64,000 nucleotides of DNA from Dimorphilus gyrociliatus (taxonomy: Eukaryota; Animalia; Annelida). This document shows, piece by piece, positions 2,132 to 31,900 of the stretch. Where the stretch lies: assembly GCA_904063045.1 (NCBI GenBank), contig CAJFCJ010000001.1:372001-436000 (forward strand), in the 5' to 3' direction. Within the stretch, counting starts at the first letter, position 1. Every line of letters begins with the position of its first letter. The translations under genes and the position numbers were made by a program. Below the pieces are notes generated by a model, which was not told where the DNA came from, did not search any database, and worked only from the letters and a program-made list of their open reading frames with translations.

Positions 2132-4215
2132 CTGGCCGTCTTTACCAAGAGTGATTGTGGGGAATTATAGGGGCGTGATGATTATGAACTGAGTCAGACG
2201 CGATTCATAGTTTTTTCCTTGTTGCCACATTTGAAGAAAGAATCATTTAGTTTGCTTATCTGGTGCTGAGTAACCGATCGGGTTTATATCGGGTCTCTTT
2301 TTTATTGCCGCTTCTAGTTCAGCCCTTCTCCCTTACATAAAGCGCGAAAGTTTATTAGAGGCTAAAGTTTCACCGTTTGGTAATTAGACGTCGTAAATGA
2401 ACAAAAAAGTTGTGAAAAGTATAGGCTAAATTAGGTGTTAAACGATGTCGAAAAGTGTCGAAAGAGTATACAGCTAATTTTCTTTCCTTCAATGTTTAAT
2501 CACGTAAAGCGTCGGAAAACCGCTAATAAAATACCAAATGAAACGATTATAATCATTTGATTGTATCCGTATTATATCGATAATAGAGCGAAGGGAAGCA
2601 AGAGGTAGGGAGTACCAAGATTTTCGACCCCCTCCCAACTGACGACGAAAAAAGAAATAAAGTCCCCAATTGTGGGACAAAAGCCTTTGTCTCGTTAGGA
2701 AGGAGGTTAGGCGGAAGGGGGGCATAAGGGAGAAAAAGGAATTAGAAGAAAAGGCTCAATAAAAGGACGCTCAAAAGCCAGCTGTCGTCCTTCGCCATAC
2801 GTAAGCCTATCGAAGTCACGCGGTAAAAGTAGGCCCGAAATAGGAACTGGCGCGTGGCCCTCGGAACTTTTGAAAACTTTTTATAAGCCCCAATTTTTTC
2901 GCCGTCTTTCTTCTGGCCAAGGACCATCTGCTCCCCCCAAACGGCTTTTTCGAAAAAAACTCTCGCGCCTAACGGTTATCCGCGCATATCTGCTTTTGGG
3001 CCTTAGACAAAGAGAGTGTATGCGCAGGGCAGGTGGCTAAGGCGCGTGCGGTGCATGTTTCTTTGTGCGCCAGCACCTGCCAGCTTGCGCCAGGCCGCAT
3101 TCGCGCATTCGACGCCGTAACGTTCGCTTCGCGCTGCTCTGCTTTGTTAGTAGAGAAAGAGGAGAAAGAAAATTTACTATTTAAGAACAATTTAGGAGCG
3201 AAGAAATTTTATATTTTCATCCCTAAATCTATTACCTTCGTAATCGCCTTACATTTCTATTGAAAAGATCGAAGCAGGAAATACAACAGGTTCGTTCACC
3301 TTTTTTTTTTTACTATATAATATATTTACTTTTTTTAAAAAAAAATCATTTGACTAAGTCAAAGCCAAGGCTTTCCAGATTAGTCTTGATGTTATTCGCT
3401 AGAGCGATAATATGCACATTTTGCCAGAGTTGTTTGTAAAAAAAAAGTTCGATTCTGTTTGATTTATGTTCTCCTCAGTCTGGCCCTTAACCTTCTTTAA
3501 CCGGGCAGGGTATCTTTTTTTGTTACTCTAGATATTCTTTAATTATCGCATCTCACAATTAAGAAAACGGAAGGAAATTCACTTCGTTTATCCAATAAAC
3601 GAGCGCCTTCTTTGTTTGTCAAATCCAGTATAGGCCTAGTTGCAGCCGCTTATTCACGTAAACTACAGTAGAGTCAGAAATAGATAGACAGTACAGGTGA
3701 GGAAATTCCTAAAATATAAATATAATTAAGTATTATGTAAAATGGAAATAGGAAGAAATCTCTTTATCATCTGCCCCCCATTTTAATGGTGTAGGAAAAG
3801 AGAGTCGACGCTGGCGAGAGTAACGGTTGCCTATAGGGCTAGAGTAGGGCGACAGATGTAGCGTATGCAGGGCAGACAAAGAGAGGCCCTACAAGGCAAA
3901 AGTATGCTGCGCACACGCGTGTTCAGTCTTTGTCTGTACGTCCAGTCTGCCCACGCGTTTTTTAAGCCAAACAGCAATTGAACGCCTCCCGGTAACGTTT
4001 CCCTGGTAACGCCGCCCCGGCTTGAACGAGGTGAATCAACCGACTCGTCTTTGTTAGCCGGCCCCAGTATAAAGGGCTTTGTTCCCGGGACGCCTCTTTT
4101 TTGTTGTTTATTATTTACTTCTCACTTCTTTTTTTTCACTGGTGGACTATCACCTAAGGGTATCTATTTAACTCTCCACTTAATCCTTTCAATTTTATTT
4201 TCAGCAGAAAGGAGG

Positions 4216-6145
4216 ATGACGACTATTCAAAGTTCTGCTACGGTACCGCCCCATCTCGGGTCTTTTGTAGACCGTCAAATTGAAGCAGCCTTATTAAGAA
4301 GAGCTTCCCCTATCGATGATAAGGGCGCAGATTCCGATTCCTCTGGTGGTTCCAGAACCCCGCAGAGGCGTCTGCTCCAAGATCATTGGTTTGAACAATT
4401 CCCTTGGCTGGAATTAGACCGGGAACAGAATTTATTTTTTTGCCGCTTCTGCGTATCGACGGGAAAGGAAAATGTATTTACCAAGGGTAAGCCATTGGAA
4501 AACCCTAAAAAAGACCACTTTGTCAAACATCAATCGTGCGGCGAGCATTTAAAGGCGGAAATTGACTATGCTCATGCTAAATCAGCTGTCGATTCCCTCC
4601 CGTTGACACCAAATACAAATGACTCTGGATCAGAAAGTCAGACAGAGTAAGTACAATTGTTAATTAAGTCTTTTAATTAGTATTACTAATAAAATTATTT
4701 TTCGTTTTAACAGTAGTCCCGCACCAAAAAGGCGCCGACAAGAAACAAGTCAGACATCCCCAGCCAAGTTGCAACAAAATCAGTTGGCCGCTCAATTATT
4801 CGCAATGCAAACTGACCCTGCTTTCCTTATGCAACAGTATGTGGCCGCTCTCTATGGACTACAATCAGGGCTTTCTTTACCGTCTCCAATGGCAGTAAAA
4901 AAGGAGGAAAAAACTAGAATGAGAGGTTCGTCAAACAAAGATGGAAAGCGACGATTCCAAGAATATTGGTTTGACCAATTCCCATGGTTGAAATTAGATC
5001 CTGGTACTCAACTATTCTTCTGTAAGTACTGCCGTGATACGGGTAGGAACAATTCATTTGCCGAAGGGAAGAAAATAGTCAAGAATCCTAAAAAGCATCA
5101 TTTCGTTCAACATCAAATGACCGCCGATCACCAGGGAGCAGTTGCTGCTTTAGGGCTACCACCGGATAACATTAAGAATATTGTCAAGAAAAGAAACACG
5201 GACAAGTCCTTTACTTCGTTAATTCATCAGAAACCCAGCGTGCTTAATACGCCTACGCCATCTCCTCCTCCCACGCAAGTTCCACTCGATTTGACTAATG
5301 TTCGTCCAAGTTCTGAGGAACTTCTTATTTCTTGGAAGAAAGAATTTTCATGGCTTCAGCCGGTTGCTGGAAGAAACGCTGTAGTTTGCATAATCTGTAA
5401 GCAATTCGCTCCAGCAACTTCCACTTCGGCTTGGTGCAAATTCGTAACTGTGCCTTCTTCAAAAGACAGTTTATATTCGCACGAAAACTCTGAGGAACAT
5501 CAACAAGCCGTTCAAACCGCGAGCTATCCAAGTTTTTTCAAACGTCAATTCAATAGCACTCTTATTTCAGACTGTGGTTCTGATACAGATTCAGTTCAGA
5601 GTAATGATTTTGAAGGGCATAGACAAAGAGCTCATAGTCGTAAAACAATTTCTAAATGGTTAAAAGCATACTCGTGGCTGAGACATAACGCTGAGAAGGA
5701 TCTGTACACGTGCTCTGTATGTAAGGAAGGGGAATGGGCTAAAGGTATCGAAGCTTTCAGAATTGAACGTGAAAACATAGTCAGACACGATGAGGAAGAA
5801 GTTCATCGTAACCAAAAAATCTCCTTGAAAAAGAAAAATTCCATTCTTGACGATTTACTAGCACTGAAATCAGCGTGTCAGTCGTCAGAATCTCTTCCTA
5901 GAGTGGATTGGTTTATGGAATTTAATTGGTTGCAATTATCTCCTGGATCTATCCTTCATTGTCGATTCTGTAAGAATGCTGAAGAGCAAAATGTTGAAGA
6001 TGATCTTTCAGGTACCGGTCTTCCTCTAGACTCTGCCGATCGCATTACATTCGAAATTCATGAACAATCCGATCTCCATAAAACACTTATTGGTCTCAAA
6101 GCCGAATCTAGCTATGAAGATTTGCCTGACAGCGCCATCTGCTGA
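4216..6145 (+). CDS. 620-aa protein with five TTF-type (hAT-transposase-related, ZNF862/ZMYM-like) zinc fingers and no transposase catalytic domain
   Basis: join(4216..4646,4714..6145); 67-nt GT-AG intron; 1863 nt in frame. Five W-x3-(F/Y)-x-W-L...C-x2-C...H-x3-5-H units (WFEQFPWL..FCRFC, WFDQFPWL..FCKYC, WKKEFSWL..VCIIC, WLKAYSWL..TCSVC, WFMEFNWL..HCRFC). NLS-like PAPKRRR just after the exon junction. Confidence 0.8.
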
Positions 6146-7202
6146 ATGTAAAGCAAACTCCCTCCCTTCTCTTTCGTTCTGGTCAGAACTTTTTATTTCG
6201 TATGACTTTTTCCTTTATCCTATTTCTATTATTTGTTTCTTTATTATTGAATTCTTGCCTTTGTTGTCTCATTTTTTGTGCCGCTTAGTTTGTTAGCTAT
6301 TTTAGGCCTAATTTAATATTTATTACGTAAATTGAGACTTTAGTATTTATGTTAAGATTTAGATTTTTTTTTGTAAGACCTTTTAGTTTCGAGTTGTGCT
6401 TGAAAAGAAATTGTTTGTTAAACCAGATTTGTGCTTGAATCTCGTGTTCTTCCAGGGCGAACACTTGATCGACTTATGAAGTCGATAATCGAATACCTGT
6501 CTCTTGTTTTAACTATAGCAGAATATATACATTTATTTATAAGAATATGTTAAGACTGTGTACTAGGTGCTCTATATGCATAGTATCCTATTAAGAATAA
6601 ACATATATCAAGAATTATGTCGGTTAATCGTTTTCAAAGTCCGGATAAAATCTTGTGATTTACTAAGTTATTCACTAACACGTTCCAGAAAAAAGAATAT
6701 TACTGCTCCTTTCAATGAATTTTTTTCAGCTTTTTAGTAAGAATAAAAAAATAAAGAACTTTTTTTACTTTCCAGACAAAAAATAGAATGCTTTATTCTG
6801 GAAAATTAAACAACTACACCTGAACGATATTATGAACATTTTGTTCCTTTTTCTGTTTACGTGTATAGTGTATACACATCACGAATAATCACGACAATTG
6901 TTTCCTAAAGCTAAAAAAAGCAGAGAGAATGACAAAAGAGAATGTAAGCAAAAAATTGACCCTATACCACGCAAAACAATTCTTATGTACCTGAAATGTT
7001 TCTATACACATACATTCATTGCCTAAGCTGAGCCGCTTCGCTCTGCATTCACTTAATTCATATTCAAGTAGACCGAGTAAAACTCTAAAGTTGAAAACCG
7101 GGTTTGTCAAGTGGAGGTGAAACGTGAAAATCTGAGGGTAAGCTAAAGGGAGATGCAGACTTTATTGTATTTCCTCCGTTCTTTTCTTCAAGTTTCAACT
7201 AT

Positions 7203-8297
7203 TTAGAAGTAGTAGATGCGAGACAGCGGCTTAATAAAGTGGTAATCTTCGATAAAACAATGAGGACACTTGGTCGCGCGGGAATAATCGGAGAAAAAGT
7301 GGAGACTATTTCCTTTATCCAGAACTGGTTGCATACAACGATTACAAGATGATCTCTGTTCGCAGCACTGATCAGCTGCGAAAACGTCGAATGTGTACAT
7401 GGTGCCCAATTGAAGGGAGCGGCCATTCCATATTTTTCGGCAATTTTGGCATCTTATGTCACCTTGAAGGCATTCCAAACAGACAGCGCAGAGATGCGAC
7501 TTGCCATTTTTCCAAGTGACTTCGTTGGCGCAAGTTCCATAGCGGTATGGAGTAAGAAAAAGTGTTCCATCGATCAGAGGGTACTGATCGAAAACCGGTA
7601 GCGATTTCGAACACAAAACGCAGCGTAGAGTTGTTACGTTCAATTTGGTTAGAGCGCAGAGAACCAATTTACGAATGCCATCGTTTCCGTGAGGACCTTC
7701 GTCTTCTAGTTTTATGTGGTATGAATTCTGTTGATCCGTAGGCAAGCTTTCAAACGCGTCTAAGCTTGTACGCCGTCGGAAGATATTTCCAGCAGCGGCG
7801 TGCTCCTTATCCAAGAAAAAGTCAAATTTTCCATTGACAGGGGAAGGGGGAGAAGTACTAGCTGACCCACCGCTGGACAGACTTTCTGTTCTTGGTCTAA
7901 TAACCGAAGAGGCTGATTTATGTCGACGTTTTCCGGAAGCAGCTTCGACTTTAGGAGCGTCTAGATCCTTTCGAATATGGCCGCGTCCGCACAAGCACTG
8001 ACACGCCTTGTACACAAGATCATAACCTTTTTTAGTCCAAACATTTTGTTGTTTTTGTTTCTCTGACCAATTCCTTGCCCTTGAACAGCTCCTAAGAATC
8101 GTTAATGCGCGTTGTTCGAATCCGTCAAAACAGTCAGCATGCATCCATCGTCCATACTGACATTGTTCATTACTGCAGACAATTCGGACGGCATTTTTTG
8201 GTTGAAATTCGTCGATCTCTCTGTCAACTTGTGCACATCCCGATGGGAGACAACACTTAAAATGAGTTTGGTGGCCGTTGTGTTGTTTATTAGGCAT
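7203..8297 (-). CDS. HECA: Headcase protein homolog, single coding exon, 364 aa
   Basis: ATG at 8297 (MPNKQH...). N-terminal headcase domain (C..C..WMH.DCF...RARNWSEKQ.QQN.WTKKGYDL.YKAC.C.CGRGHIRKDLD) and C-terminal domain (FDQYPLIDGTLFLTP...LQLGTMYTFDVFAA..CC..R..C..C...CPHC..EDYHFIKP). Confidence 0.93.
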   Translation of the reverse strand: MPNKQHNGHQTHFKCCLPSGCAQVDREIDEFQPKNAVRIVCSNEQCQYGRWMHADCFDGFEQRALTILRSCSRARNWSEKQKQQNVWTKKGYDLVYKACQCLCGRGHIRKDLDAPKVEAASGKRRHKSASSVIRPRTESLSSGGSASTSPPSPVNGKFDFFLDKEHAAAGNIFRRRTSLDAFESLPTDQQNSYHIKLEDEGPHGNDGIRKLVLCALTKLNVTTLRCVLCSKSLPVFDQYPLIDGTLFLTPYRYGTCANEVTWKNGKSHLCAVCLECLQGDIRCQNCRKIWNGRSLQLGTMYTFDVFAADQCCEQRSSCNRCMQPVLDKGNSLHFFSDYSRATKCPHCFIEDYHFIKPLSRIYYF

Positions 8298-8833
8298 TTT
8301 CACAGTTTTCTCAGCTGATTTCTTTCATAGTAGTGCCGTTCGAATGAACACGGCGGTGCCTAGACGTTGTTTACCAAAATCGCGCACCATTCACGACCAA
8401 GCTTACAACAGCACTTTTGTAACGCGCACGCTGATTGGCTACAGATACTCGGCTAATGTATACAAACATATCGATTATACATAGGTCGAATTAGGTCAAG
8501 GTCTATTTCTCTGCAACATGGAGTTCCAGATATAGGATAAATTTTTAATCTTTCGGTTTTTTATCGATACGCGGCGTTCAGACAGTTAATTGTTGTAAAT
8601 GAATTTTTAGAATCGGTTTATTTTATTACTATTTTGTTCTGTAAAAAGCGGACTCATTTTTTAATTACTAATACGCGGACGTGATACAACTACGTGCTGA
8701 CGACGTTTTTTATTCTGAGAATTCTAGACCACTGACCGGATTCGTCCGGAAACAGGGACTATAAACAGCACGGTGCTGCCATCTCAATCAAACAATACAA
8801 AAGTTCAAGTTGACATTTTGATCCATATCCGCT

Positions 8834-10927
8834 TTATTCACCATTCTTTTGAACTATTCGTACTTCGATTGCTTCGTCCCTTTGTTCACCTTCTGCTTCA
8901 TCGTTCTGTTGCCTGATTAGCTCTGTATTATCGTCTTTTTCTGCCACTGATAAAAACAATTAATTCCAATTAATAATGTTCTATTTTTATCGTATTTGCT
9001 CAACACACAAAATACAATATGTATATTGATACGATTAATACACGCGCGAGAGTAATCCGTATGTTGCTATTAATACTTATAATAATAAATATAGAAAAAA
9101 TAATAAATAATGAAATTTCTATTTAACGGACCAGGATTTTCTTTCACGTCTTCATTTCCTTTTTCATCCGAAGTTGCTTCCTCTTGTTTAGTCTCTTCTT
9201 CTGTTTCCTCTTCCGGTTCAACTACAGTTCTCGCTTTGGCACTACTTTGGCGGGTTGAAGGTGCAATATTACTGGGTGTTGGTTGCCTTGGAATCTATGT
9301 GCAAATCATCTTGTTTACTTAAATAGAGTTCAAAAGTGTAAAAAGAATTATGCATTTATTTTAATGATATTGAATTGAACTTACTTTGACGCGCCTTGCA
9401 GATGGGATTCTTTGACTGTGAGAATGAAATAGACAAAGTGACTTGTGTGTACATTGGCACGTACGCCAAAATTCTAAATCTACTAGGACATACTCTAGAC
9501 AAATATCAAGAATATAAACCTAAATATCACGTGATGTATCTACTTTCTAAATCACGTGATGATGTGCAGAAAACTATATAATAAGCTGTGCGTGCTATTT
9601 GCTAATACGGTTAAAGCGCTACATTTAGGAATACTGCTTTATCTCCATTCGATAGCTTCAGATTTAACGGTAGATGGCGCAATGATCAGCGATATTTACA
9701 ATACTTGGCTTGAATAAGTAAAAGAGCGCCTTAGTCGTTGTAGTAATGATTATATATATATATACTAAAATATAAAGAGAATATCTATACCTAAACTGTT
9801 TACTTGCACAAATGGCTCGAAGCTTTTCCAATTCGCTTTCATCAACAGAAAATTTCGTTTTCATTCCCAATTTCATCCCGCACATGACGTATCTATTATC
9901 CACGCGATGAGACTGTATCTAGAACAGTATTCATTCATAATTATTAATGTTACTGTTTAATGAGTGATTTGTAGTTACTAGAAAAGGGGCGGGAATATGA
10001 AAATGTAGCTAAATCTCAATATATCTTAATACGTTAAATAATAAATAGAAATCGTACATATGAAAACTTGCGTACATCAGACGGAAGTAGTTTGTAGTTA
10101 GTATCTACCTGGGCTGATCTCATTAAGGCCCTGGTAACAGCTCTCTGTTTTTGTTCCGTTTCGAACCTGTGAGCTTGGGCTGACTGATTGCAGACTGGAC
10201 TTTCTTTTAACATTAATTGTCCAGAAGTGAACGTTGATGAAGATTTTGCTGAGGCAGTTCTCGATGAAAAACGCCTTGAGGAAGAGACTCTGCTGCTACT
10301 GGGTAAGTGAATTTTCTTTTTAATAATAATGAAAATAATAGTGAAATAAAAACAAATTCTTAAAAGTTGTTTGCGTTAAATGATTAAGTTGGTCGGTTGA
10401 TGGATTAGTTCAGGTTGATTGGCGTTCGATCAAAGCTCGAATTGGATGATTAATAGCAATTAAATACCTTGGGTCCGTTAAACGTGGTGCTGTAAATGGT
10501 CGTACTCTGTCCGAATGTTCTTCCGGATGATCAATGGTTATCTGTAATATTAATTTCTCGTTGAATTCACTGAATAGTCTTGAATCAATTCAATTAAAAT
10601 AATGTTCATAATTTTCTCCTTTCTATGTTTTGGTAAACTTACTGGCACAATCATATCTTTAATATATTTAGGTGCGGCTAATGAACTTTGCATTCCCGTT
10701 GGGATTCTCTTCTCTGAGGGGCTCCTGGGACTCGCAGACAGTGGAAATTGGTGCAATAAACGCATATTATTGGAAGTTTTTAGGTCTATTCTACGGGAAG
10801 AGGCGTTATTTAAAAGTTGATTAGTAGAATATGACGTCCTTGGTTTAAGAAGCGGTGACACGAATTCTGGGCCGCCGGTCCAAACAGATTTTGGCGTGGG
10901 GAAAGGAAATACGTAGCTTTTCTCCAT
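8834..10927 (-). CDS. Hypothetical 344-aa protein (Ser/Arg-rich middle, CxC...C-x-x-H cluster, acidic C-terminus)
   Basis: complement(join(10643..10927,10468..10541,10109..10298,9804..9918,9385..9479,9132..9294,8834..8946)). All six introns are GT-AG with matching phases; 1035 nt. No family recognised, and some splice sites have alternatives. Confidence 0.6.
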
Positions 10928-15890: not shown

Positions 15891-18800
15891 ATGTTGCTGC
15901 TGGCGTTAATCGCGACTGCGTTAGGTAAGGTGTTTGCGTTTTTACGTCTATTTCTTTTTCGCCCATTAAATGAGCTGAATACTCCCTCGCTTTCGATTTC
16001 TGAATAGACCCCAGCTGGCGTCGAAAACGCCTGTGATAATATTACAACAAAAGTAACTTAGACTCTTTCCATATTTATCTCTTTCATTTCTTCTTAAAGT
16101 TTCCTTTTAACTGACTGTAAGAAATAGATGATCAGAGAAAGGCAATAAAAGAGAAGGAGAACAAGGCAAATAGAAAAAAAGGGACAACAAATGAGAATCG
16201 GAGCGTTTCGGTTCAGTTTCCTTTCACTCTTGGGGCGTTCCGCTTTACTATTTCTTTTGCTTTTTTATTATTATTATAAATTTTTTCGGTTGCTCAAATT
16301 AATTGTTATAATAATAATAATAATAACGTGTTTATAACTGCTCAGCCGAGAATTTGTTAGTTTACATAACCCCCCGAAGCAGAGAGCAGCAGTCGCCTTT
16401 TATGATTCAAACACCTGTTTGGAGCGATATTTTCGATTTTCGACCAAGTCCTCTTTCTTTTTGTATCTATTTGAGAAAAAAGAACAATTTATTGGGTTTA
16501 TATACTCTTTTTGATATTGAATAGAAGGAAATAAGCGAATTGTAAAATTAAAATGGGATCAATTTCTGCAGAAAATTAGTTTTATCCATTCTTTTTTTTT
16601 TAAATAAAGTTTCTTTTTATGAATAATGGAAAAATTTACACTGTGAATAAGACCGCAATAAGATCAAATTGATTTCTTTATACTTTATAGGCATTCTGTT
16701 CAGAGTACTTAAATTAAAAATTGTCTAAAACGAACGAACATTGCATCCTAGTGTATAATTTTGTAGGAGTACCAGCACATTTTTACATGCTTAATTGCTT
16801 ATTTAAACCTAAACAAACTGGTTCTGTTATTTAAATAAAATACTTAATAATCTCAGTTTTTTAATCGCTGTCACATTGGCCAGAACTCACTATTAAATTG
16901 GTAGCAACATTTTCTTCAATATCCAACCTAAGAGCAATTTTAAACCTATTTTGGTCCTTCTTAGCACATGATGGGTTTGTTCTCCCTGTAATTAATGCAA
17001 TATCTACGAATTCTTTATCTTACTTGAAGAATTTATACGAAGATTGCGACAGTTGCTCGTTCAAGTTATACATGTTTATTCTGTGCATATCTTAGTGTTT
17101 CAACTAAATTCAACTATTGATCGTTTTATGAGGTTAAGAAATCGTTTGAATTCAAACTTGCTTGCCATTGAATATTATCCCCCAGAGGTGTTCGTAATTC
17201 CTTGGGAATAACACTTAATCGCCGGTTACCCTTATTCCTTCTAACATATATATCCTGTTACAAGCTATTTTGGTCTACTGCAGTACAAACATCATACAGC
17301 AAATTTATGCCTATAAAGTAAGCTATTTACCATTTGTTTTTTTATTTTCACAGGTCAAATACTAGGCGGTCATCACGAGGAGCGTCTCATTCGTGATATT
17401 TTCGAAAAGAGAAGGTATAGTGGCTTAGCAAGACCTGTAGAAAATGAAAGCGATCCCTTGGAGGTTGAGTTTGGCTTGTCATTGCAGCAAATTGTCGATG
17501 TCGATGAAAAGAATGAGATGCTACATACAAATATGTGGTTAAAATACGACTGGAAAGACTACAATCTGTCCTGGAACAAATCAGACTATGGAGGCGTCGA
17601 GAGTATACGGCTGCCGTCTAATAAGATATGGACTCCTGATATACTCTTATATAATACAGCTGACGAAGATATAGATAGTAAATATCCGGTCAACGTAGTC
17701 GTTTATAGTTCTGGGGCATGTAATTGGATTCCATTGGGAATATACATCAGTTCTTGTGCCATAGACATTAAATGGTTTCCGTTCGATGATCAATACTGGT
17801 GAGTAGTTTGTGTCATGAATTAGCATCTTCCACTCAATACAGTCTCTTCCCTAATAACAATCAATGTCCCTTTGGCAGCAAAATGAAATTCGGAAGTTGG
17901 ACATACGATGGATCCAAAATCAATCTTACATCCAAAAGCGATACAATAGATATTGAAACCTATCAAAAGAGTGGAGAGTGGATATTATTGGGTGTTCCTG
18001 CCAAAAGGAACATTATTAAATACGAGTGCTGTCCAGAAGAATACATTGACATTACATTCACAATTCATATACGACGAAGAACGCTCTACTATGGATTTAA
18101 TCTTATCATTCCCTGCGCCCTCATTTCCTCCCTAACTCTACTGACGTTCCTTCTTCCGCCCGATGCGGGTGAAAAAATTTCGCTAGGTAAGTCATTTTTC
18201 ATTTTTGTCTTCGTTTAGCTTATTATTTTTTTTACACCAATTATAAGAATTACTGGCTAGTCCATTTCCAGTAATGCGATGCCTCGGTTACTTTTTTCTT
18301 ATTGTAGAACGTATGAAGTAGGCACTTGAGTAAGAAGTTGTATTTATAATCTGATAAGGGAAGAAAGAAATTAATACTTATATACTGTATTTAAAATATA
18401 TTACGTTAGGTTATTTAGTATGTTATACCGGTATATAAAAAAGTCTATTATACTTATTTAATACTCATATCAATAATCGATTTATTACTTAAAAAAATCT
18501 GTCCTTATTTACTACAAAAGATTGTAGCCTTTGATATTTTTTTCAATAACTATACCATTTACTATTAAATTAAGGATTTCTTTTATTATACCAATCCACA
18601 TTGATATAGTTAATTATTATCGTATTAATAATGTCGGAAGCGTTTATTGCCCATTAGTCGTCTTTTAGTTAGATATCCTGTCAGAGAATATATACCCTGC
18701 TTCATATACTGTATACACCTTATATATATATATACAGTATATATGAAAATATATAAATAGAAATATATAGAGGAAAAAGGGAGGGAATATATTTAATAAA

Positions 18801-21609
18801 GTGGAAAAGGGAGAAAACGCCCCACTTGCCTTATTTATTCTAAAAATAAAAAGGTTTGTGCTCAAGCAAAGGGGAAAAAAGGAAAGAGGAAAAGGGGATG
18901 GAAAAATATAAAGAAACATGGTAAAAGAGGAGAAGGGTAATGCGAAATGCCGTCAGACACTCAAAGTGTATATTGACCTAAGAGTCACGTGATGGCAAGA
19001 AATACCTTAATAGATAAACACTATGAAAGCATGCACTTGAAATTTATATAAATCGGGTCAGGAATTACTATAGATTTTACAAAGAATGGAGAAGTGAAAC
19101 GAGATAACCTAAATATACGTCTGAATAGTTTCGTTTATATAAAGGACAAGAAGTTTATTTCTCCCTCGACCATTCCTTACTCCCTTATCCGAGCAGATAA
19201 GAGTAGCGGTTAAACTAATCGGCTGGAAAGAAACTAAGAGAGGAGGAGACTGTTGAAATTTGACTTTCATGTATCACTTTTCTTCTTCTCTTTCTCGAAA
19301 AATCTTTTAGAAAGAGCTTTAAAGAGCAAGTGAGGCGAGAACCTGCGTAAATAATGTCAAGAGTTTTCCTAAACTATTCTCCTTTTGCCTAACTCCTTTA
19401 GTTCGTGGCGAACCTATTCTATAAACAATCAAGTAAAGATGAACAATCAAATTGACTTTGTCCTAAGATCGACTGATGATAATGGACGAACGCAATGTCA
19501 ATTTTAGTTTAGAGAGCTTTTCGTTGCATTCTTAAGGAGAGCCCCATTATATCATTTGTTTAGCTCCCACGTTGCCCCCTCTCCCCCTCTCTCCCCACTT
19601 GATTCATCTCTTACCATTTACTCTGTCTTCTCCCCCCAATTTTCTTCGAAGCGAAATAAGAAACAAATCAACGAGTTGAACTTTTAATGGTCTGATAAAA
19701 TTCTCTTCGGCGGAAAAGGTTAGGGTTCTCTCCCCTTCCTTTCTTACTTTTTTGCGCTAACTTTATGAATCCCATCTTACTCCATCTTTGATCCTAAAGT
19801 AATTATATATACATAGCTGAGAATTTATGGCGTACAAGTGATATCCTCATGGAGTAAAAATAAATCAACTATAGGATTGGGGGAAGGTCGCTAAAGACGA
19901 GGCATCGCCGCATCTTAAGAAACAACACGTTTATTTATTATTAGGAATAGGTCAAGATAGAACATAGGATTTAAGCTATGATTTATTTTTATATATAAAT
20001 TGAATTTGTTTATAAAAATTATAATTATATTCTAGAAAAAGTATTTATAAATATAATAAGTTATGCCGGGGAAGCATTGCCAGGGGGAGGCCAGTCGAGC
20101 TGGACAAAAAAAGATACTAACTGCAAATACTAACAGGCATTACAATTCTCCTGTCGCTCAGTGTTTTCATGCTAATCGTCGCTGAATCGACACCTCAGAC
20201 ATCTATGGCTGTGCCATTGATAGGTAAGAAACGCTGGCTGACCACCCCCTTCTAAAAAATAAAAACAACAGCAACAACGACCTTTTGCATACATGCAGAC
20301 ACTAAACGCATAATATAATTATTTTAACTATTACGAGTTGCTTTTTTCTCTGAACTACCGAAAACAATTTTTATGCAGTGGTTTGGCTTTGATTTCTTTT
20401 TCCACTATATTGTTTTTTTTTTATTTCCGCTCAATCTCTTTTACGTTATCTTATCTATCCAAGAGAGTATGATAATGGTTTAGAGAATGAATGATTACCA
20501 AAGATTGTGAGACAGAGAGAAAGACCGAAAGAGAGAAAGAGCGAAAGGGAGATAGAGAAAGAGAGACCGAGAGAGAGAGGGAGAGAGAGAGAGAGGGAGA
20601 GAGAAAGGGGAAAAGAAAGAGAGGGGAAATATCTAACTGAAACAAAAAAGAAAATATAAAAGTTGCGTGATTGTGTAACGAAAGATGAAAACGAATTGTA
20701 TTTAAAGCTAAGGTTTTGTAATTGTTTGAATAATATATTTGAATTAATCAATTCTTAAAAAAAAGAAGAAAAATGTAATTAATTAATAATAGAATTATGT
20801 AAAGATAAAAAGAAAAAGCTTAAAAAAATATACACAACCTTCTTTCTTTTTTTTCCTTTACTAACAACGAACTCAGGAATAACAATACTCATGTCATTGA
20901 GCGTCCTCTCACTGATCGTGTCTGAATCAGTTCCAACCACCTCCCTGGCAGTGCCGGTTTTAGGTCAGTAGGTGAGGTCGTCTCGTGTACTAATGTGCTC
21001 ATATAATGGCGCCAAATTTGCCTGACAGGTATTACCATCCTCTTATCGCTCAGTATGTTGATGCTAACTGTCGCCAAAATTGTTCCCAGTACGTCACTTG
21101 GCGTGCCGAGAATTGGTTCGTATTTTACAATAATAATAATAATAACAACAAATAATAATAATAATATTAATAATAATATTAATAATAATAATACATGTTA
21201 CACCTTGCAAGTATCCTGTATTATTAATACTTTTTTTGAGAAAAACTTCATTGAAGTATAGAATTTGAAAATAAAAATAAAAATCAAGTTTTATCTTTAA
21301 TAGTGAAAATTATTAACCCCATTTTGAGAACTATATATATATATATATATATATGAATATATATATCAAACTTCAATAAATCTCTATTCAAGGCCAAATT
21401 TTTAGAAATATGTATATACATATATTTTATATATATATACACCTTTTTCATTCGTATATATGAATAAAAGTATATACATATCACTTTACCGGTCAGGCTG
21501 GCGCCCGATACGTTGTTAATTCTTTTTATTTTATCTTTAATGTATCTAATATTTTTCCATACCTTTTTCTTCTTATAAAAAAATAACAACCTACATCTTT
21601 TCATACATG

Positions 21610-21643
<34 letters not shown>

Positions 21644-22989
21644 GAATACTCTGTAACACTTTAAACTAAAATCAATACAATATACATGTTTTCTTCATGA
21701 ATGAAATGATATATATGTATCAACTGTGTTTTTTTATCCTCCCTCCACCGCCCCTTCCATCCCCTTCTCTTCTACTTTTACACAGTCACCTAAAATTGTT
21801 TTTTTTTGAGCATGCTTGTCTTCTTTCCTTCTTTCTTCTTTCCATATTTTTTCTTTTTTTTTTCTTTTTTTACTTTAATGTTTGTTTATGCATCGAAAAG
21901 CACGAATGTAGAAAAAAAAAAAAAAAACAGAAAATGCTTTTTTGTTTTTTTAAAAAAAAAATATTTATATATATATATACAGTAATTTACGTTATAGCTA
22001 CGGTTTCCATCATTTCTGACACGAATAAAGATAAATATGATAATTATTTTTGTTAATGCGAACCTTTTATTACTCTAAAAATCAAAAGTGATGTTAGTTA
22101 CAAGGGAATTCATAGCTATAATATCAACGTCTTTAAACTATATTAACGATATAGTTTAGAGTACGTGAAAAGATGATAAATGGCTTAGTTGTGACCTACT
22201 TTTTCTTTTTTAATTTCTTTTCCTATAAAGCTTATGATAAAGCATAAAACAGCTGTCTTTCAACAGGAATCTATTTTGCCGCCATCATGTTTATGTGTAG
22301 CCTATCGGTAATCATGACCGTGTTAGTATTGAATTTCCACCATCGAAATCCGGACATGTACGATATGCCCAATTGGGTAAGTTGATTTTCTCTTTTCTTT
22401 CTTTTGCCAATTGGCTCAATTTATTTGGGCAAAAAGTTCTCATACGAAAGGGGACATGTAAGTATACGAAGACAAGAGGCCTAAAGAAGAAGTAACTATC
22501 ATTTGATCACGAATTATTTTTGATAACACTTGAAAGAACACTCTACCTGTACAGATTCGAAAAGTTATTTGCGAGTGGTTGGCATGGATTTTACGCATGT
22601 CAAGACCAGGAAAAGATATATCTAGGGAATTTCTTCTTCGAAAAGCAAGAATGAGAGAACTGGAGAGCAGACATCCTCCCAGTTTAAGCTTATTATCGAA
22701 TGTAAAAGATGTCGATAACGCTATACCATTGAACGACTTCCCTCCACTTCGTTCCATTCGAGTAGATGACGGAGGTTTTACATCAGTTCGAAACGAATTG
22801 TTGGCTATACTCAACGAATTGAGATACATTACTCACAAGATTAAAGAGGATTCGGAAGCTTCCGAAGAGATTAACGATTGGAAATTTGCCGCTATGGTTA
22901 TCGACAGGTTGTGCCTGTGGGTATCGGCCCTATATATGGGTATTACGACAGCGGCTATATTCTTTTCAGCACCGCATCTAGTTAGTTAA
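15891..22989 (+). CDS. Nicotinic acetylcholine receptor alpha subunit, alpha7-like (cation-selective), 472 aa, with three alternative M2 exons
   Basis: join(15891..15924,17354..17798,17879..18186,[one 87-nt exon: 20137..20223, 20877..20963 or 21029..21115],22267..22376,22555..22989); 1419 nt. Signal peptide [21 protein letters not shown], Cys-loop [15 protein letters not shown], loop-B GSWTYDG, vicinal cysteines YECCPEEY, M1 [27 protein letters not shown]3 [10 protein letters not shown]4 [13 protein letters not shown]. Confidence 0.95.
20074..20100 (+). other. Candidate upstream intronic RNA docking element (U) of the nAChR M2 exon cluster
   Basis: GC-rich island in an AT-rich intron. Complementary to 20233-20250 (16 bp) and to exon B 20940-20954 (15 bp). 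Confidence 0.6.
20137..20223 (+). CDS. nAChR alternative M2 exon A: (G)[28 protein letters not shown](G)
   Basis: 87 nt, phase 1/1; acceptor tactaacAG, donor GTAAGA. Confidence 0.9.
20511..20625. repeat. Imperfect (GA)n purine tract between nAChR M2 exons A and B
   Basis: Directly visible. Confidence 0.8.
20877..20963 (+). CDS. nAChR alternative M2 exon B: (G)[28 protein letters not shown](G)
   Basis: 87 nt, phase 1/1; long pyrimidine tract, TACTAAC branch point and CAG acceptor; donor GTCAGT. Confidence 0.88.
21029..21115 (+). CDS. nAChR alternative M2 exon C: (G)[28 protein letters not shown](G)
   Basis: 87 nt, phase 1/1; acceptor ctgacAG with TACTAAT at 20988-20994; weaker donor GTTCGT. 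Confidence 0.82.
21129..21193. repeat. (AAT)n microsatellite just after the exon C donor
   Basis: Directly visible. Confidence 0.85.
21488..21505 (+). other. Candidate downstream intronic RNA docking element (D) of the nAChR M2 exon cluster
   Basis: Isolated GC-rich ACCGGTCAGGCTGGCGCC. Complementary to the exon C 3' splice site region 21008-21030 (17 bp) and to 20232-20243 (12 bp). Confidence 0.65.
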
Positions 22990-24448
22990 TTGTTTCTTCT
23001 TATGTTGCTATCGTCCTTTTATACTCGTGTCAAAAGTTGGTTCTTGTATTTGACTGAACGCTCGTAAAAAACATTAGTCATTTTTTCTACGATCTACGAA
23101 GGATTTAGTGTATATTTTGGTCTTTTTTTTATTATTTTCGTATTTAAGACCTATATTTTCGTAATTAAAACGATTAATATTATTATTTTTTAATTATCTT
23201 TCCCTTTAATTAGTAAATGCTTTTATAATAATTTTTAAATAAAAGGAATAAGCCTCTAGTACCACCTGTCTTGATTGGTTAATGATACATACAAATCTTA
23301 TTTGACCTTTATAAAACTTAAAAAAAGCATTTTTCCATCTAATTTTTTCTGCTCTTCTTTACCACTTAATACAAATAATCTTAAATGCTAAGAAGCATAT
23401 AAAAACAAATATAAGAAAATAAATCAATAATAAAATGGAACAGAGGCTAAACTTCTCCCGCCTCTTTCCACTTTTCCATTTGCTCTCAGTTCCTCCCTCA
23501 TACCCCTTGTCTAATAAGAAAGGAGGAAATGTTCATCTAGCTCTCTTCTCTCTTTTGACAAATTCAACAATTTAAGTAATCTCTGTATAAAATGTGGCCA
23601 ATTGTAAGAAAATGATAGGACACTAGACAAAAATGGAGAAGAGGATACATAGGTCAATATCTTAAAAGTATAAATCGAATATCTGAAAATTATTTTCAAA
23701 CAAAAAGAAAGCTTTAATATAAAGCATGAATAGAATATTTTTTCTTTCAATTTATTGCCAATATTGTGAATTAAACTAGTTAAGTATTTACATATTATAG
23801 GAATGTGGTTTTATAAAGAAAAGATATAAAAAATGAGATCGAGAAAAGAGTTTTATGAAGGAAAGAGAGCGAGGGAGAGAGAGAGAGAGAGGGTGGGGTG
23901 AGGGGGGGGGAAGAACATCTGTCGGATTTCTGTATGCTAGGTATAAAGTGTAAACAAGTTTTAGGCGGCCGATTAGAACAGCTTAGTTCTCCTACTCATT
24001 TTTTATTCTGGTTTTCCTATTTCTTAAATATTTTACAATTTTCTTTATTTTTTAAGTGTTAAGGTTTTATAGACCGAAATGATTATGTTAAGTATTTTAA
24101 TAAGTATACTATTGAAAAATAAAAAAATGTATTCAACTCGTGTTTGCTTATGCAATTTTGAGCTTAACGATCTGTTTAGATAAGCTAAAATGCACAGTAA
24201 ACGAGCCTGTGATTCGTCTCATTAACTTTATCAGTCAAATTTGATTTAAGAGTTAATTCAACTGTTGAAATAAGAGAAATATCTAAATTTTAAATATAAT
24301 ATTTTTATAATAAAACAATTGCTCATATTTTTTCTATTTTATGTGTTTTTATTTCTCTATTAACGTCTTTAGTAGCTTCTACAAGTGTTACTTTTTTCCC
24401 TTTTTCTCATAAATTGTATTTCTTTCTTTCTCGCTCTCTCTCTTCTCT

Positions 24449-28728: not shown

Positions 28729-28982
28729 GGAAAAGAGCGCTCACCAGTTTGTCGACAAAGCGTCACCAGCTTCAGTTTGTTGGATAAAACCTTAGCAACT
28801 TTTTTTGTTTTCAGGCTTTTAATTTGAAGATAGACATTGACTTTGTTTCTGCTTTTGCCTGTAAGCGATAAGGAAGAAAGAAGAAAGTATGGCAGAGTTT
28901 AATTAGCCTATAAAACGAGAATTTGCCTATCTCCTATCAGCCGAAATTCGTTGCAGACTTTCTTCTAAACAACTCCGACGTC

Positions 28983-31900
28983 ATGCTGAACAATTCGTCT
29001 GGTAATACCTCGAGCCAGCAAGCTCTCCTATACCAAATTATTGGTCAAAGCGTAGTAGGAGTCATATTTATCGTTGGTATAATAGGAAACATAATGGTTA
29101 TATTAGTTGTAGCAAGAACGAAAAGTATGAGAACACCAACCAATTGTTACCTTCTTTCTCTGGCTGTAGCGGATTGCTTGGCGCTATTAAGCACAACTAT
29201 ACCTATTCAAGTAGACTTTCACATCCAGACAGGAAGATGGGTTTTTGGAGAAGTAGGCTGTCGGATTATCATATTTTGTCAATATACAACAACTACTGCT
29301 TCTGTATTATCAATAACTGCCTTTACTATAGAGCGTTATATTGCAATTTGCCATCCTATGAAGGCCCAGACTGTCTGCACTGTGAGTAGAGCCAAAAGGA
29401 TAATAGGAGGTACCTGGGGATTTTCTCTTGTATATAACTCCCCTTGGTTGTTTTTCGTGAAAATTACTACGAACAATTCAAAAATACCAATATGCGACTT
29501 TTCCTTGGACAGAAAGCATTATATTGTTATCTATATGTGCGATTTAATGCTACTATATGTAAGTCCTCTACTGCTGACTTGCGTCCTCTATGGCCTAATC
29601 GGACGGATGTTATTTAGAAATCTGACACCAGGAGGACACAATGACTCGGCCAAGCGATCTAGCTCTAGAGTACAGGTAATGGCTTTCGTGACGGAATGTA
29701 GAGATAGAATCTATAAAGCTTTCCTTAAAAAATTTTCGCTTTTACTATCGTAATCCTATACCCATAGCTACATGAATGGTTTATATTTATATACCTCGAA
29801 AAATGAATACTTTTCCTATTTCTAAACTAATTAGCTAATGTATATAATCTCTCTCTCTTTCTCACTTCTGTTTCCTACTTTATTTCTATCTCTTGTCCTA
29901 CATTTTCTCTCTCTTCCTCCCCTTTTTCCAATGCTTTCTCTCCTACAATCATCATTCCATTCTAAGTAGATTTGAAAAGTTATATATATATATATATTAT
30001 ATATCAATGCTGGTTTTGAAAGGGAGACTTTCTTAAAGGCAATTAACAAGATGATTTAATATTACATTATGAGAAAATTTTTTTAATTTGTTTTTTTTTT
30101 CAATTAACATGGTAAAATGTGTTTTCTAATGGAATTTAACTTAATCAATGTTTCAAAACAGCTTGGCTTTTCTATTTGAAGGGAGAAAACTGTTTGGCTT
30201 TTTTTGCTACACAGAAATTTTAGGTTGTAATTTATAAGCAGAAAAGCAATGATTGAAAAACGAAAAGTATTTAATGTTATTAAACGAACGATTATGATAT
30301 ATGAAAATAAAAGTAATAAGAGATTGGAAAAGTGCATAAAGAATATTAAATTGGTACGGTACTTTCTTTTCTATTTAAACAACGAAAGACATCTCTTTTC
30401 CAAATAGAGTATACATATATAGATATATTTTGTGATGGATATATACTCTAAATTTAAGTATAGAATTTCTAAAAATGATAGATAATATAAGGAAATGTAT
30501 GAAAAATGCTTCTTGATAGAAATAAGAAATAAGGCAAGTTAATATTAGTTTTAAGAATTCGATATCGATACATGATACGTTTATATTCCCATGTAAGATA
30601 TACTATAATATAAAAATATTAAGCTAATATAATTTAAAGAGTGCATTTACGTCCAAGGTAGTAAGTTCCACTGACCTCTCTTACTATATTAAAATCTAGC
30701 TTATCCAAATTAATAATAGTTTCTATAGAAATAAACCTAGTGGTTTTTCCCTTAAGGCGGTATCAATCAGTGCGTAAGGCGTTTAGAATTGGAAATGATA
30801 TTTCCAGCTCTAATTTAGTGACTCTTCAGTTGTTTCTCTCCTCTTTGAAACCGTTCTTACATATCTATTCAATATAAATTTGTGTAGTTGTTTCTACTTA
30901 GCGTCTTATTTATCTTTAACAAAGAATTTCCCATTGTCTTTTATTATTAAGTAATGAAATAAAGAACCCAATTGAAGGCCAAAACGTCGATAGGATCAAT
31001 GAGAAACGATTTCTCAATCAAGCACGACAATTTAGCTTTGCCACTCCATAAACCAATTAAACAAATTAAAATTGAGAGAGAAAAATGAATCACGTGATTG
31101 AGAGCCGAATAAATCTTCAGATTTCTTTGTGAGGCATTGAATCGTGCGATTATCGATCGTAAATTCGACTCTAAAACCTAGAAAATTAGCTTTGTTTCAT
31201 CGCTTCATCTGCCTGGAATGTAGGTCTATTACTCATAAATATTATTTTTTTTTTGCTGTATATTTTAGGGTTAGCGTATAAAACCGGATATTCTATAGAT
31301 CAATCGTTCATTCCATAGATTAGGTGCTAGCATACGTTTTCTTTAATATAACTGGTTGTACTAAAGATTAACGTTGATATCTCTTGCGGTATGTAATATA
31401 AAGTTTTAGACTTTATACTGCGCATAAAACTTGAAGCATCGCCTAAAAAAATCATTTGGTAACCTTCTTTCGGCCGTCTGTCAGAGAAATTGATAAAAAT
31501 TGTATAAATCTTTGATAACTAGAGTTCGAATTTTATATTGATATATAATTATAATGTATAATATTGTCTTTGATGGAAAAGCATATCTATTATTCAAATT
31601 ATTGTATGTTAGGTGTATAGGTCTTTGTAGGCATAAAGCTGAATTTATATGTAATTACTGTGCGTAAATAGATAATCATACCTATATATATATATATATA
31701 TTAAATTGAACCAAGACTGCGAAAAAATCCGATTACTTACATGATAAAGTCATTTCTAAAACATGAAAAATTTCGTTTCCATCTATATCTTCCTCATTTC
31801 AAGTTTCCCTAATCGATTTCTAATTTCTCTCTAAACTAATTAAATAATATAAAAAAAATAAGATGAAAGATGAAGGGGAAAAACTAAAATTGCCTAATAA

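Follow-up and report, generated by a model that had tools for sequence, protein, structure and literature searches.

Candidate docking/selector RNA pairing at a cluster of alternative M2 exons in an alpha7-like nicotinic acetylcholine receptor gene

We analysed a 64,000-nt stretch of Dimorphilus gyrociliatus DNA (hereafter the window), in which an alpha7-like nicotinic acetylcholine receptor (nAChR) gene carries three tandem exons, A, B and C, for the M2 helix. M2 is the pore-lining helix of the channel, and the choice of exon therefore sets conductance and ion selectivity. A deeply conserved intronic block downstream of exon C, here called D, can base-pair with the exon C acceptor and probably hides that site, and this pairing is best read as the solid core of a docking/selector-type system. 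We put the probability at somewhat better than even (about 0.55) that the M2 cluster is mutually exclusive and controlled by a bidirectional docking/selector architecture, with the duplex between D and the exon C acceptor at its core and a less certain duplex between an upstream element, U, and the end of exon B.

A tandem cluster of alternative M2 exons

The host gene encodes the Pfam domains Neur_chan_LBD and Neur_chan_memb, and the open reading frame (ORF) of its M1 exon contains the vicinal cysteines (YECCPEEY). The best solved relatives of the encoded receptor are human alpha7 (E = 1e-40). By these features the gene is an alpha7-like nAChR subunit gene. Among named homologues, the closest come from annelids and orthonectids, and it lies in a compact, AT-rich genome.

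All of the features described below lie on the + strand. A constitutive exon at 17880–18186 ends in M1 (GEKISL-G), with its donor at 18187, and a constitutive M3 exon of 110 nt occupies 22267–22376. Between them lie exon A (20137–20223), the candidate exon B (20877–20963) and exon C (21029–21115), which are 87 nt each, agree in phase and code for homologous M2 peptides. The vertebrate alpha7 exons 8 and 9 have the same sizes, 87 nt and 110 nt. Exon A is identified by its translation and its RNA junctions, and exon B by an intact frame between AG/GT splice signals, while the translation of exon C shows a VAE motif with Lys for Glu, which swaps the outer-ring Glu for Lys. The donors of the alternative exons (GTAAGA, GTCAGT and GTTCGT) are weaker than the constitutive GTAAGT. 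The intron between exons B and C (20964–21028) is 65 nt long and unusually G+C-rich, and its branch point may be TACTAAT, which lies some 30 nt from the donor, or the CTGAC adjoining the AG.

The RNA contigs contain M1-to-A, A-to-M3, M1-to-C and C-to-M3 junctions: the last 25–27 nt of the M1 exon are fused to either A or C, and the M3 exon receives either one. A single 1778-nt contig spans M1, C, M3 and the last exon. Exons A and C are used alternatively. Among the RNA contigs, which drop rare forms, neither an exon B junction nor an mRNA with two cluster exons was seen. The coding differences that we observed are synonymous, with two in exon A in the read sets X13 and X14, and one in exon B (G20920A), the sole exon B difference seen in the X1 lineage. 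These data support a tandem cluster of alternative pore exons in an alpha7-like nAChR gene.

An earlier reading of the same DNA, made from the sequence only, had argued that nonsense-mediated decay (NMD) does not enforce exclusivity here, and the exon sizes bear this out: since all three exons are 87 nt, NMD cannot police their exclusive use. Double inclusion would stay in frame and escape surveillance, so that some dedicated mechanism must enforce the choice.

The D block and the exon C acceptor

The sequence-only reading had placed five short elements around the M2 exons and described three of them, U, SA and D, as GC-rich islands. The positions and sequences of all five are as it described, and U, SA and D have 70–78% G+C, as compared to 15–30% in the intron windows around them. 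The D block (21486–21525) is a downstream docking-like element. Its 5' half (21487–21505) is complementary to the exon C acceptor element (21008–21031), which consists of CTGAC-AG and the first exon bases.

Within the element boundaries of the sequence-only reading, the duplex between D and the exon C acceptor has 17 bp and an RNAduplex energy of −29.3 kcal/mol. When compared to dinucleotide shuffles of either partner, the pair reached −32.2 kcal/mol against −14.5 ± 2.9 (z = −5.6 to −6.2), and 0 of 1000 shuffles did as well. Across about 21,000 35-nt windows of the 64-kb window, D and the exon C acceptor are reciprocal best partners, although another, unrelated site in it reaches −31.0 with D. 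In the minimum free energy (MFE) structure, 21008–21031 pairs with 21487–21505 in helices of 7, 7 and 4 bp, and in the ensemble fold of 20040–21560 the duplex has a near-unit probability, with about 17 summed pair probabilities. In a same-species run, the depth of the M1-to-C junction contig was similar to that of the constitutive exons, so that a C-hiding duplex was not dominant in that run.

The D block is identical at 40 of 40 positions in the loci L006 and L007, where the flanking intron is unalignable, and in a relative with the identical block the last exon is only about 90% identical. It is one of two exact matches of at least 40 nt in the 1151-nt intron. Neither D nor the exon C acceptor element is changed in any sequence where it is visible, D alone being readable in L006 and L007. 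In the X1 lineage, no more than one difference falls in the B–C intron, as against 7 substitutions and 4 indels over 142 nt in the intron just upstream of exon B. D is a flanking intronic element conserved beyond its surroundings, as expected of a docking site, and with the exon C acceptor as its best complement it behaves like one. The block showed no local fold (z = +0.5), no match in an exact scan of the JGI metagenome contigs and no second copy in the window, and no Rfam family matched anywhere in the window, D included. The possibility that D and the exon C acceptor form the inverted repeat of a transposon was rejected, as the block is unique and its flanks carry no visible target-site duplication.

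The same conservation could have another cause. D, and perhaps U and SA, might be intronic splicing regulators bound by proteins, with hnRNP H/F-like or PCBP-like factors on the G-runs and C-runs and a sequence-specific factor on D, and with a coincidental complementarity to the exon C acceptor. The second conserved block of the intron (21997–22044) is in line with this idea: it is ultraconserved, and no RNA partner above background was found for it, so that pairing cannot be concluded from conservation alone. The duplex covers one half of the D block, and the search for a partner of the other, 3' half (21506–21525) gave nothing above background; an 8-bp match of 21512–21519 to the exon B branch region (20861–20868) is well placed, yet at chance level. 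In addition, G-runs dominate U and a C-run dominates SA, and the region-wide null given below is only about 1 in 28 per top duplex. On the other hand, a coincidence would have to produce reciprocal best partners within 64 kb at z = −6, and to place the partner exactly on the splice signal of an alternative exon. By our estimate, a site would have its best partner in 64 kb within one of the two conserved blocks of the adjacent intron with a chance of about 1/1000. We regard protein binding with coincidental complementarity as unlikely, but as an alternative to be taken seriously.

U, SA and the remaining duplexes

U (20066–20100) is a G-rich intronic element, located 37–71 nt upstream of the exon A acceptor, and is a candidate upstream docking site. 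It is complementary to the coding 3' end of exon B (20938–20958), with 12 contiguous bp between 20943–20954 and 20074–20085. The sequence-only reading had counted 15 bp in this duplex, where we find 14 bp (−28.1 kcal/mol within its boundaries), while its sizes of 17, 16 and 12 bp for the other three duplexes stand. Dinucleotide shuffles matched the U:exon B duplex in 14–19 of 1000 cases (z = −2.3 to −2.6; p ~0.015–0.02). No 35-nt segment of the 64-kb window pairs better with the exon B end than U does, and at −33.5 to −36.5 kcal/mol the two form the strongest duplex in the region once low-complexity pairs are set aside. It coexists in the MFE structure with the duplex between D and the exon C acceptor.

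A second read set, in which X13 and X14 were informative and X15 is a bisulfite library, provided a comparison for this part of the gene. The block from U to SA is identical at 215 of 219 positions in X13/X14, and the neighbouring contig sequence is unlike the window. U is unchanged in these sequences, whose contig departs from the window just upstream of 20032, and SA is conserved as far as the contig alignment reaches. The evidence that U is conserved beyond its surroundings is suggestive. In the X1/X2 lineage, the substitution G20084A in U makes its pairing with exon B about 3 kcal/mol weaker, and the exon B end was not seen to carry a compensating change in that lineage. The codon bias at the exon B end, a possible sign of selection for pairing, showed nothing unusual.

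SA (20232–20250), which is C-rich and lies 9 nt beyond the 3' end of exon A, is a weak candidate selector. Its best partner in 64 kb is U, tied with unrelated sites. The U:SA duplex (16 bp, −25.2 kcal/mol) is no better than its shuffles, of which 202–237 per 1000 were as good (z = −0.7 to −0.8), because a G-run faces a C-run, and it is minor in the ensemble fold of 20040–21560. D:SA (12 bp, −19.2 kcal/mol) is marginal, with z = −1.6 to −2.3 and 16–62 of 1000 shuffles, and has zero probability in the same ensemble. The sequence-only reading had proposed that all four duplexes be compared with shuffled controls; in this comparison, two of them exceed chance, D:exon C acceptor clearly and U:exon B modestly, while D:SA is borderline and U:SA is not above chance.

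A network of functional, competing pairings would combine these four duplexes, in which U alone would lead to exon A, U:SA together with D:exon C acceptor to exon B, D:SA to exon A, and U:exon B to exon C. The four-duplex switch as a whole is partly supported. All four duplexes can be drawn, their overlapping partners make competition geometrically possible, and the layout fits the expanded bidirectional model (PMC4691838). The choice of U as the best partner of SA, and the persistence of both elements in X13/X14, are also consistent with it. Against the network stand the shuffle and ensemble results for U:SA and D:SA, and exon B, the target of two of the four pairings, is in no RNA contig junction seen. 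We consider it improbable that all four duplexes operate.

Complementarity across the region

For the region-wide null, we generated 28 shuffles within 20-nt blocks, which keep the local composition. A best duplex of −36.5 or lower arose in 1 of the 28 shuffles and a second best of −32.2 or lower also in 1 of 28, while both together arose in none. The block-shuffled sequences frequently yielded duplexes of −30 to −35 kcal/mol, as would be expected if the pairings were chance complementarity among G+C-rich islands. Exclusivity would then come from splice-site competition, tissue-specific factors or steric interference in the B–C intron, and the weakness of the alternative donors and the shortness of this intron (65 nt) are compatible with such an origin. 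Against this, D is conserved within an otherwise unalignable intron. The gene also has a constitutive intron of 79 nt, so that a length of 65 nt may be nothing unusual, and steric interference cannot account for the exclusivity of A and B or of A and C. This account appears to us no more probable than the full network, and perhaps slightly less so.

The reading of U as an editing-site complementary sequence, forming an ADAR substrate with the exon B end, draws on the intron–exon duplex and on the editing of insect alpha6 transcripts (PMC1919356), and was rejected, as the duplex has only 12–14 bp, the paired part of exon B contains a single A, at a synonymous third codon position, and A>G differences are absent from the same-species RNA contigs.

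Proposed mechanism

In the docking/selector reading that we prefer, D, about 370 nt downstream of exon C, would pair with 24 nt comprising the branch-like motif, the acceptor AG and the first exon bases. The duplex, which we infer to form in vivo, would loop out exon C and conceal its acceptor, and a transcript committed to exon A (or to exon B, if used) would splice directly to M3 without an in-frame exon C. The same duplex would draw the exon B donor, located 45 nt upstream of the stem, near the downstream intron. The exon C acceptor element is also, by position, the element downstream of exon B, and with the B donor brought there it would double as the exon B selector, as in a downstream-docking design. 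Less certainly, U would pair with the coding 3' end of exon B and loop out exon A and most of exon B, thereby favouring exon C. The exon favoured by each pairing is, in all of these steps, a prediction.

A bolder version would be a bidirectional docking/selector switch that evolved independently in a non-arthropod, in which the splice signals and coding end of neighbouring exons would serve as selectors, and a single 40-nt block would both pick among pore helices with Glu or Lys in the outer charged ring and block the in-frame double inclusion that NMD misses. We think that this version is rather unlikely to hold in full.

Relation to known systems

Docking site/selector pairs are known from arthropod Dscam1 exons 4, 6 and 9, 14-3-3xi and Mhc (Graveley 2005; Yang et al. 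2011, via PMC6071210, PMC11802352). The present cluster shares with them the tandem homologous exons, a conserved flanking intronic element, a complement beside a variable exon and the potential for loop-out. It differs in having only one statistically solid docking:selector pair, and in that its selector is the acceptor of the next exon together with a branch-like signal, rather than a separate intronic element.

A two-sided network is not new in principle, since a bidirectional pairing model has been described for srp exon 4.1/4.2 and Dscam exons 4 and 9 (Yue et al. 2016, PMC4691838). As in the srp model, docking sites would lie upstream and downstream with the selectors between them, the upstream pairing favouring the distal exon and the downstream pairing the proximal ones, and the arrangement of U, D and their partners agrees with that model. 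In srp, disruptive together with compensatory mutations established both stems (PMC4691838), whereas in the present case the partner of U lies inside coding sequence and its support is moderate.

The exon layout resembles that of insect nAChR alpha6, in which exons 8a, 8b and 8c are three mutually exclusive exons for TM2 (PMC1919356; PMC6393475). Both are alpha7-like subunits with three alternative TM2 exons, a likeness of layout. No RNA-pairing mechanism for the insect alpha6 cluster is described in the papers that were searchable. The sequence-only reading had known of no mechanism of this kind for the pore exon of a Cys-loop receptor, and our literature search agrees with it, as it found no paper that ties RNA pairing to an nAChR pore exon or another Cys-loop receptor exon.

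Outside arthropods, a conserved intronic RNA structure controls the choice between exons 5a and 5b of vertebrate SCN-alpha genes, with minigene and antisense evidence and the involvement of Rbfox2 (bioRxiv 10.1101/2025.08.16.670673), and competing RNA structures act in human ATE1, again with minigene and antisense evidence (PMC7797038). These genes have mutually exclusive exons of equal length, for which NMD is not the enforcer, and conserved intronic elements whose pairing promotes skipping of one exon, features that the cluster described here would share. SCN-alpha, like nAChR, is an ion-channel gene, while both SCN-alpha and ATE1 differ from it in gene family and phylum. If the duplex between D and the exon C acceptor is what enforces the exon choice, RNA-pairing control of mutually exclusive splicing would extend to a Cys-loop receptor, and D would offer a single 19-nt target for an antisense blocker.

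Related loci

Orthologues were sought with the last-exon ORF, the M1-exon ORF and a minus-strand ORF across exons B and C, using HMMER and word-indexed searches. The window's own 130-aa ORF had no entry on record. No orthologous three-exon cluster was found among the retrieved loci, of which L011–L014 end too near the last exon to reach the cluster. In the distant loci L002, L003 and L004, no M2-like exon was found. L001 contains three tandem paralogous genes with one M2 exon apiece. As the related loci carry a single M2 exon, the triplication of this exon may be independent of the insect one. Two relatives carry other tandem exons: besides a single M2 exon each, L015 carries three M3 exons and L016 two M1 exons. 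Exon duplication has been proposed to create competing RNA structures (PMC6071210), and with relatives in which M1 or M3, and not M2, is in tandem, this gene family provides a natural test of that idea.

Exon organization of the alpha7-like receptor gene

The cluster lies in a gene, on the plus strand, that encodes an alpha7-like subunit of a nicotinic receptor. The upstream ORFs match Pfam Neur_chan_LBD and the beginning of Neur_chan_memb, whose end falls in the last exon; the nearest solved structures are those of human alpha7 (E 1e-40), and among named homologues the last exon is closest to those of Owenia and Intoshia. The M1 exon, with terminal GEKISL, ends at 18186 and is followed, all on the plus strand, by three 87-nt M2 exons, A (20137-20223), B (20877-20963) and C (21029-21115), the M3 exon (22267-22376) and the last exon, which starts at 22555. 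The B-C intron measures 65 nt and the C-M3 intron 1151 nt. The M2 exons, which have the places and lengths assigned to them in the sequence-only reading, are homologous and of the same phase, each coding for G-I-T-I-L...V-P-x-(I/L)-G. Exon C has VAK (at 21076-21078), as compared to VAE in A and VSE in B, replacing Glu with Lys in the outer pore ring, and the M2-M3 linker has an Arg (VPRIG). The architecture of several acceptors is unusual, with a branch-like YTRAC directly abutting the AG (CTAAC-AG, 20128-20136; CTGAC-AG, 21022-21028; TCAAC-AG, 22260-22266) and a scant polypyrimidine tract.

In its exon arrangement, the cluster resembles the insect alpha6 exon 8a/b/c cluster, which codes for TM2 (PMC1919356). 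Vertebrate SCN-alpha exon 5 comprises same-length, mutually exclusive ion-channel exons, and their control by RNA structure has been shown (bioRxiv 10.1101/2025.08.16.670673).

Predicted duplexes around the M2 exons

The U element (G-rich, upstream of exon A), the SA element (C-rich, downstream of exon A) and the D element (21487-21505, downstream of exon C) had been described as GC-rich islands, and their G+C content is indeed 70-78%, against mostly 15-30% in 100-nt windows of the introns. They were proposed to form four competing duplexes that choose one exon. Over the extents first proposed, RNAduplex gave 16 bp and -25.2 kcal/mol for U:SA, 17 bp and -29.3 kcal/mol for D with the exon C 3' splice site, and 12 bp and -19.2 kcal/mol for D:SA, in agreement with the predicted sizes; U with the exon B end formed 14 bp (-28.1 kcal/mol), not 15.

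When the stretch from the M1 exon to the M3 exon was scored for all pairs of 35-nt windows, the strongest were trivial matches of a GA repeat with CT tracts; with these excluded, the two leading pairs joined U to the 3' end of exon B (-33.5) and the exon C acceptor (21008-21031) to D (-32.2). Both are present at near-unit probability in the ensemble fold of 20040-21560, whose minimum free energy structure contains U:B as 12 contiguous bp and C acceptor:D as 7+7+4 bp.

Three null models were applied. In 1000 dinucleotide shuffles of either partner, the sequence-only reading's own yardstick, no shuffle reached the energy of D with the C acceptor (z -5.6 to -6.2), and 14-19 reached that of U with the exon B end (z -2.3 to -2.6). 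The corresponding counts were 16-62 for D:SA (z -1.6 to -2.3), 202-237 for U:SA (z -0.7 to -0.8) and 351-372 for U:D, which is not significant. By that yardstick the proposed network fails for one duplex, U:SA, and is weak for another, D:SA; moreover, U:SA is minor in the ensemble fold and D:SA is absent from it. Overall, the sequence-only reading is confirmed in part as an observation and supported in part as an interpretation, and the full four-duplex network is improbable.

Each element was also scored against ~21,000 windows of the 64-kb window. D was the best partner of the C acceptor (runner-up -28.6), the C acceptor was the best partner of D (runner-up -31.0), and for the exon B end U ranked first (runner-up -31.8). 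U was also the best partner of SA, but was tied with unrelated sites, and five control sites (A acceptor, B acceptor, C donor, exon A end and D 3' half) had their best partners elsewhere. In the third, family-wise null, shuffling inside 20-nt blocks kept local composition and purine/pyrimidine tracts were filtered out; the observed best (-36.5) and second best (-32.2) were each matched in 1 of 28 shuffles, and together in none of the 28. On thermodynamics alone, the case is persuasive for D:C and moderate for U:B, and support for U:SA is absent.

Farther upstream, 18277-18287 and 19901-19911 form a perfect 11-bp G+C-rich complement, GCGATGCCTCG and CGAGGCATCGC (-29.6 kcal/mol including its extension), with arms 90 nt past the M1 donor and ~170 nt before U. 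Paired, they would place the M1 donor beside the cluster, with 1.6 kb of the upstream intron looped out.

Conservation of the elements

A relative was reached via the last-exon ORF P0154 (98% amino-acid identity; loci L005-L008). Its last exon is ~90% identical in DNA, and most of its intron is unalignable with the window. The C-M3 intron retains two, and only two, non-repetitive exact matches of at least 40 nt, 21486-21525, which holds D, and 21997-22044. The D block is conserved, and half of it lies outside the D:C duplex. The block occurs once in the window, shows no self-fold (z +0.5), and Rfam has no match anywhere in the window. The other block, ~220 nt upstream of the M3 exon, is identical at 48/48 positions in L005-L007. 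No convincing RNA partner was found for it within 17000-24000 (best -18 kcal/mol), so that conservation does not by itself mean pairing. In the same intron, 22133-22162 forms a local 9-bp hairpin, AAACTATAT...ATATAGTTT; two L006 differences turn A-U into G-U pairs, and the pairing is thereby kept.

Near-identical DNA is present in samples labelled coral metagenome. DNA contigs from two coral-labelled metagenomes (X13, X14) differ from 20032-20250 at four positions; the two that are listed are synonymous and fall in exon A. Directly upstream of 20032 these contigs are unlike the window. This lineage therefore keeps U, SA and the region of the A acceptor. In the X1/X2/X6 lineage, ~9% of positions differ in 22077-22294, at most one in the B-C intron, and about five in the 144 nt upstream of exon A, including G20084A inside U. 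With G20084A, U:B loses stability (-28.8 instead of -31.6), as does U:SA (-21.9 instead of -25.5), and in these runs the exon B end showed no change that would compensate. A bisulfite-type library labelled as the same organism (X15) has C>T at 36 listed positions of 20033-20241, CpG included, and the stretch appears unmethylated.

Exon use in RNA

To read exon use, RNA contigs assembled from the same species and from close relatives were aligned to 19000-23400. Both A and C occur joined to the M1 end; the A-to-M3 joint is GT..AG and skips 2043 nt, and a single 1778-nt contig runs from M1 through C and M3 to the last exon. No contig joined two cluster exons, and none from four runs contained an exon B junction, rare forms dropping out of contigs. 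The frame and splice signals of exon B are intact, its sole X1-lineage difference being the synonymous G20920A. Since the M1-to-C junction contig has a depth similar to that of constitutive exons, exon C is probably the major form in the same-species run; given this abundance, a repressive D:C duplex cannot be constitutive. In one contig from run X8 (20135-21056), 27 nt of M1 are fused to A and the sequence then continues through B as far as C, with the A-B and B-C introns both unspliced. Possible explanations are that the upstream intron is excised ahead of the downstream one, or that mRNA was chimerically assembled with pre-mRNA or DNA.

A possible role for D and U in exon choice

The solid core of these observations is a conserved downstream element with the exon C acceptor as its best complement. 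We consider functional pairing of D with the C acceptor, with U:exon B as the likely second arm, slightly favored (probability about 0.55). Pairing takes in the CTGAC motif, the AG and the first bases of the exon, and exon C in its entirety falls within the loop. If the duplex acts as looping-out and splice-site masking do elsewhere (PMC11802352), it should repress exon C, and it would also place the exon B donor, which lies 45 nt 5' of the stem, beside the downstream intron. A downstream docking site works in this way with selectors that follow the variable exons in 14-3-3xi and in exons 4 and 9 of Dscam (PMC6071210). The proposed logic is that of the published bidirectional docking/selector model, and U, which lies upstream of the cluster and has its partner at the 3' end of exon B, matches the upstream docking site of that model (PMC4691838). 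With U paired to B, exon A and most of B would be looped out, and the first acceptor left open would be that of C.

Transcription reaches D ~460 nt past the C acceptor, which makes a timing role plausible: C could be chosen early, and after D appears, C would be locked away, preventing A+C or B+C products, both of which are in frame. A literature search, with subscription journals mostly outside it, found no paper in which RNA pairing is tied to an exon cluster of an nAChR or any other Cys-loop receptor.

Related loci and the surrounding window

Other organisms carry alpha7-like genes with different duplications. L015 (GCA_029979845.1) has three M3 exons (5623-5724, 6544-6645 and 7097-7201) and a single M2 exon, and L016 has two M1 exons (10046-10249 and 10319-10522), also with a single M2 exon. 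L002 has several M3-like copies (587, 2233, 4767, 7951 and 8870), perhaps tandem M3 exons, and no M2 exon was found in it; L001 has three tandem paralogous genes instead of tandem exons. That relatives carry one M2 exon but tandem M1 (L016) or M3 exons (L015, perhaps L002) suggests that transmembrane exons were duplicated repeatedly and independently in the alpha7-like family.

Genes are densely packed in the window and have long single exons. Long ORFs on the plus strand encode a C17orf113-type zinc finger (two ORFs, 4051-6142), a rhodopsin-type GPCR (28923-29750), a 632-aa Ig/FN3 (DSCAM-like) exon (48128-50023) and a C2H2 zinc finger (63002-63694), and a one-exon Headcase homologue lies on the minus strand (7206-8303).
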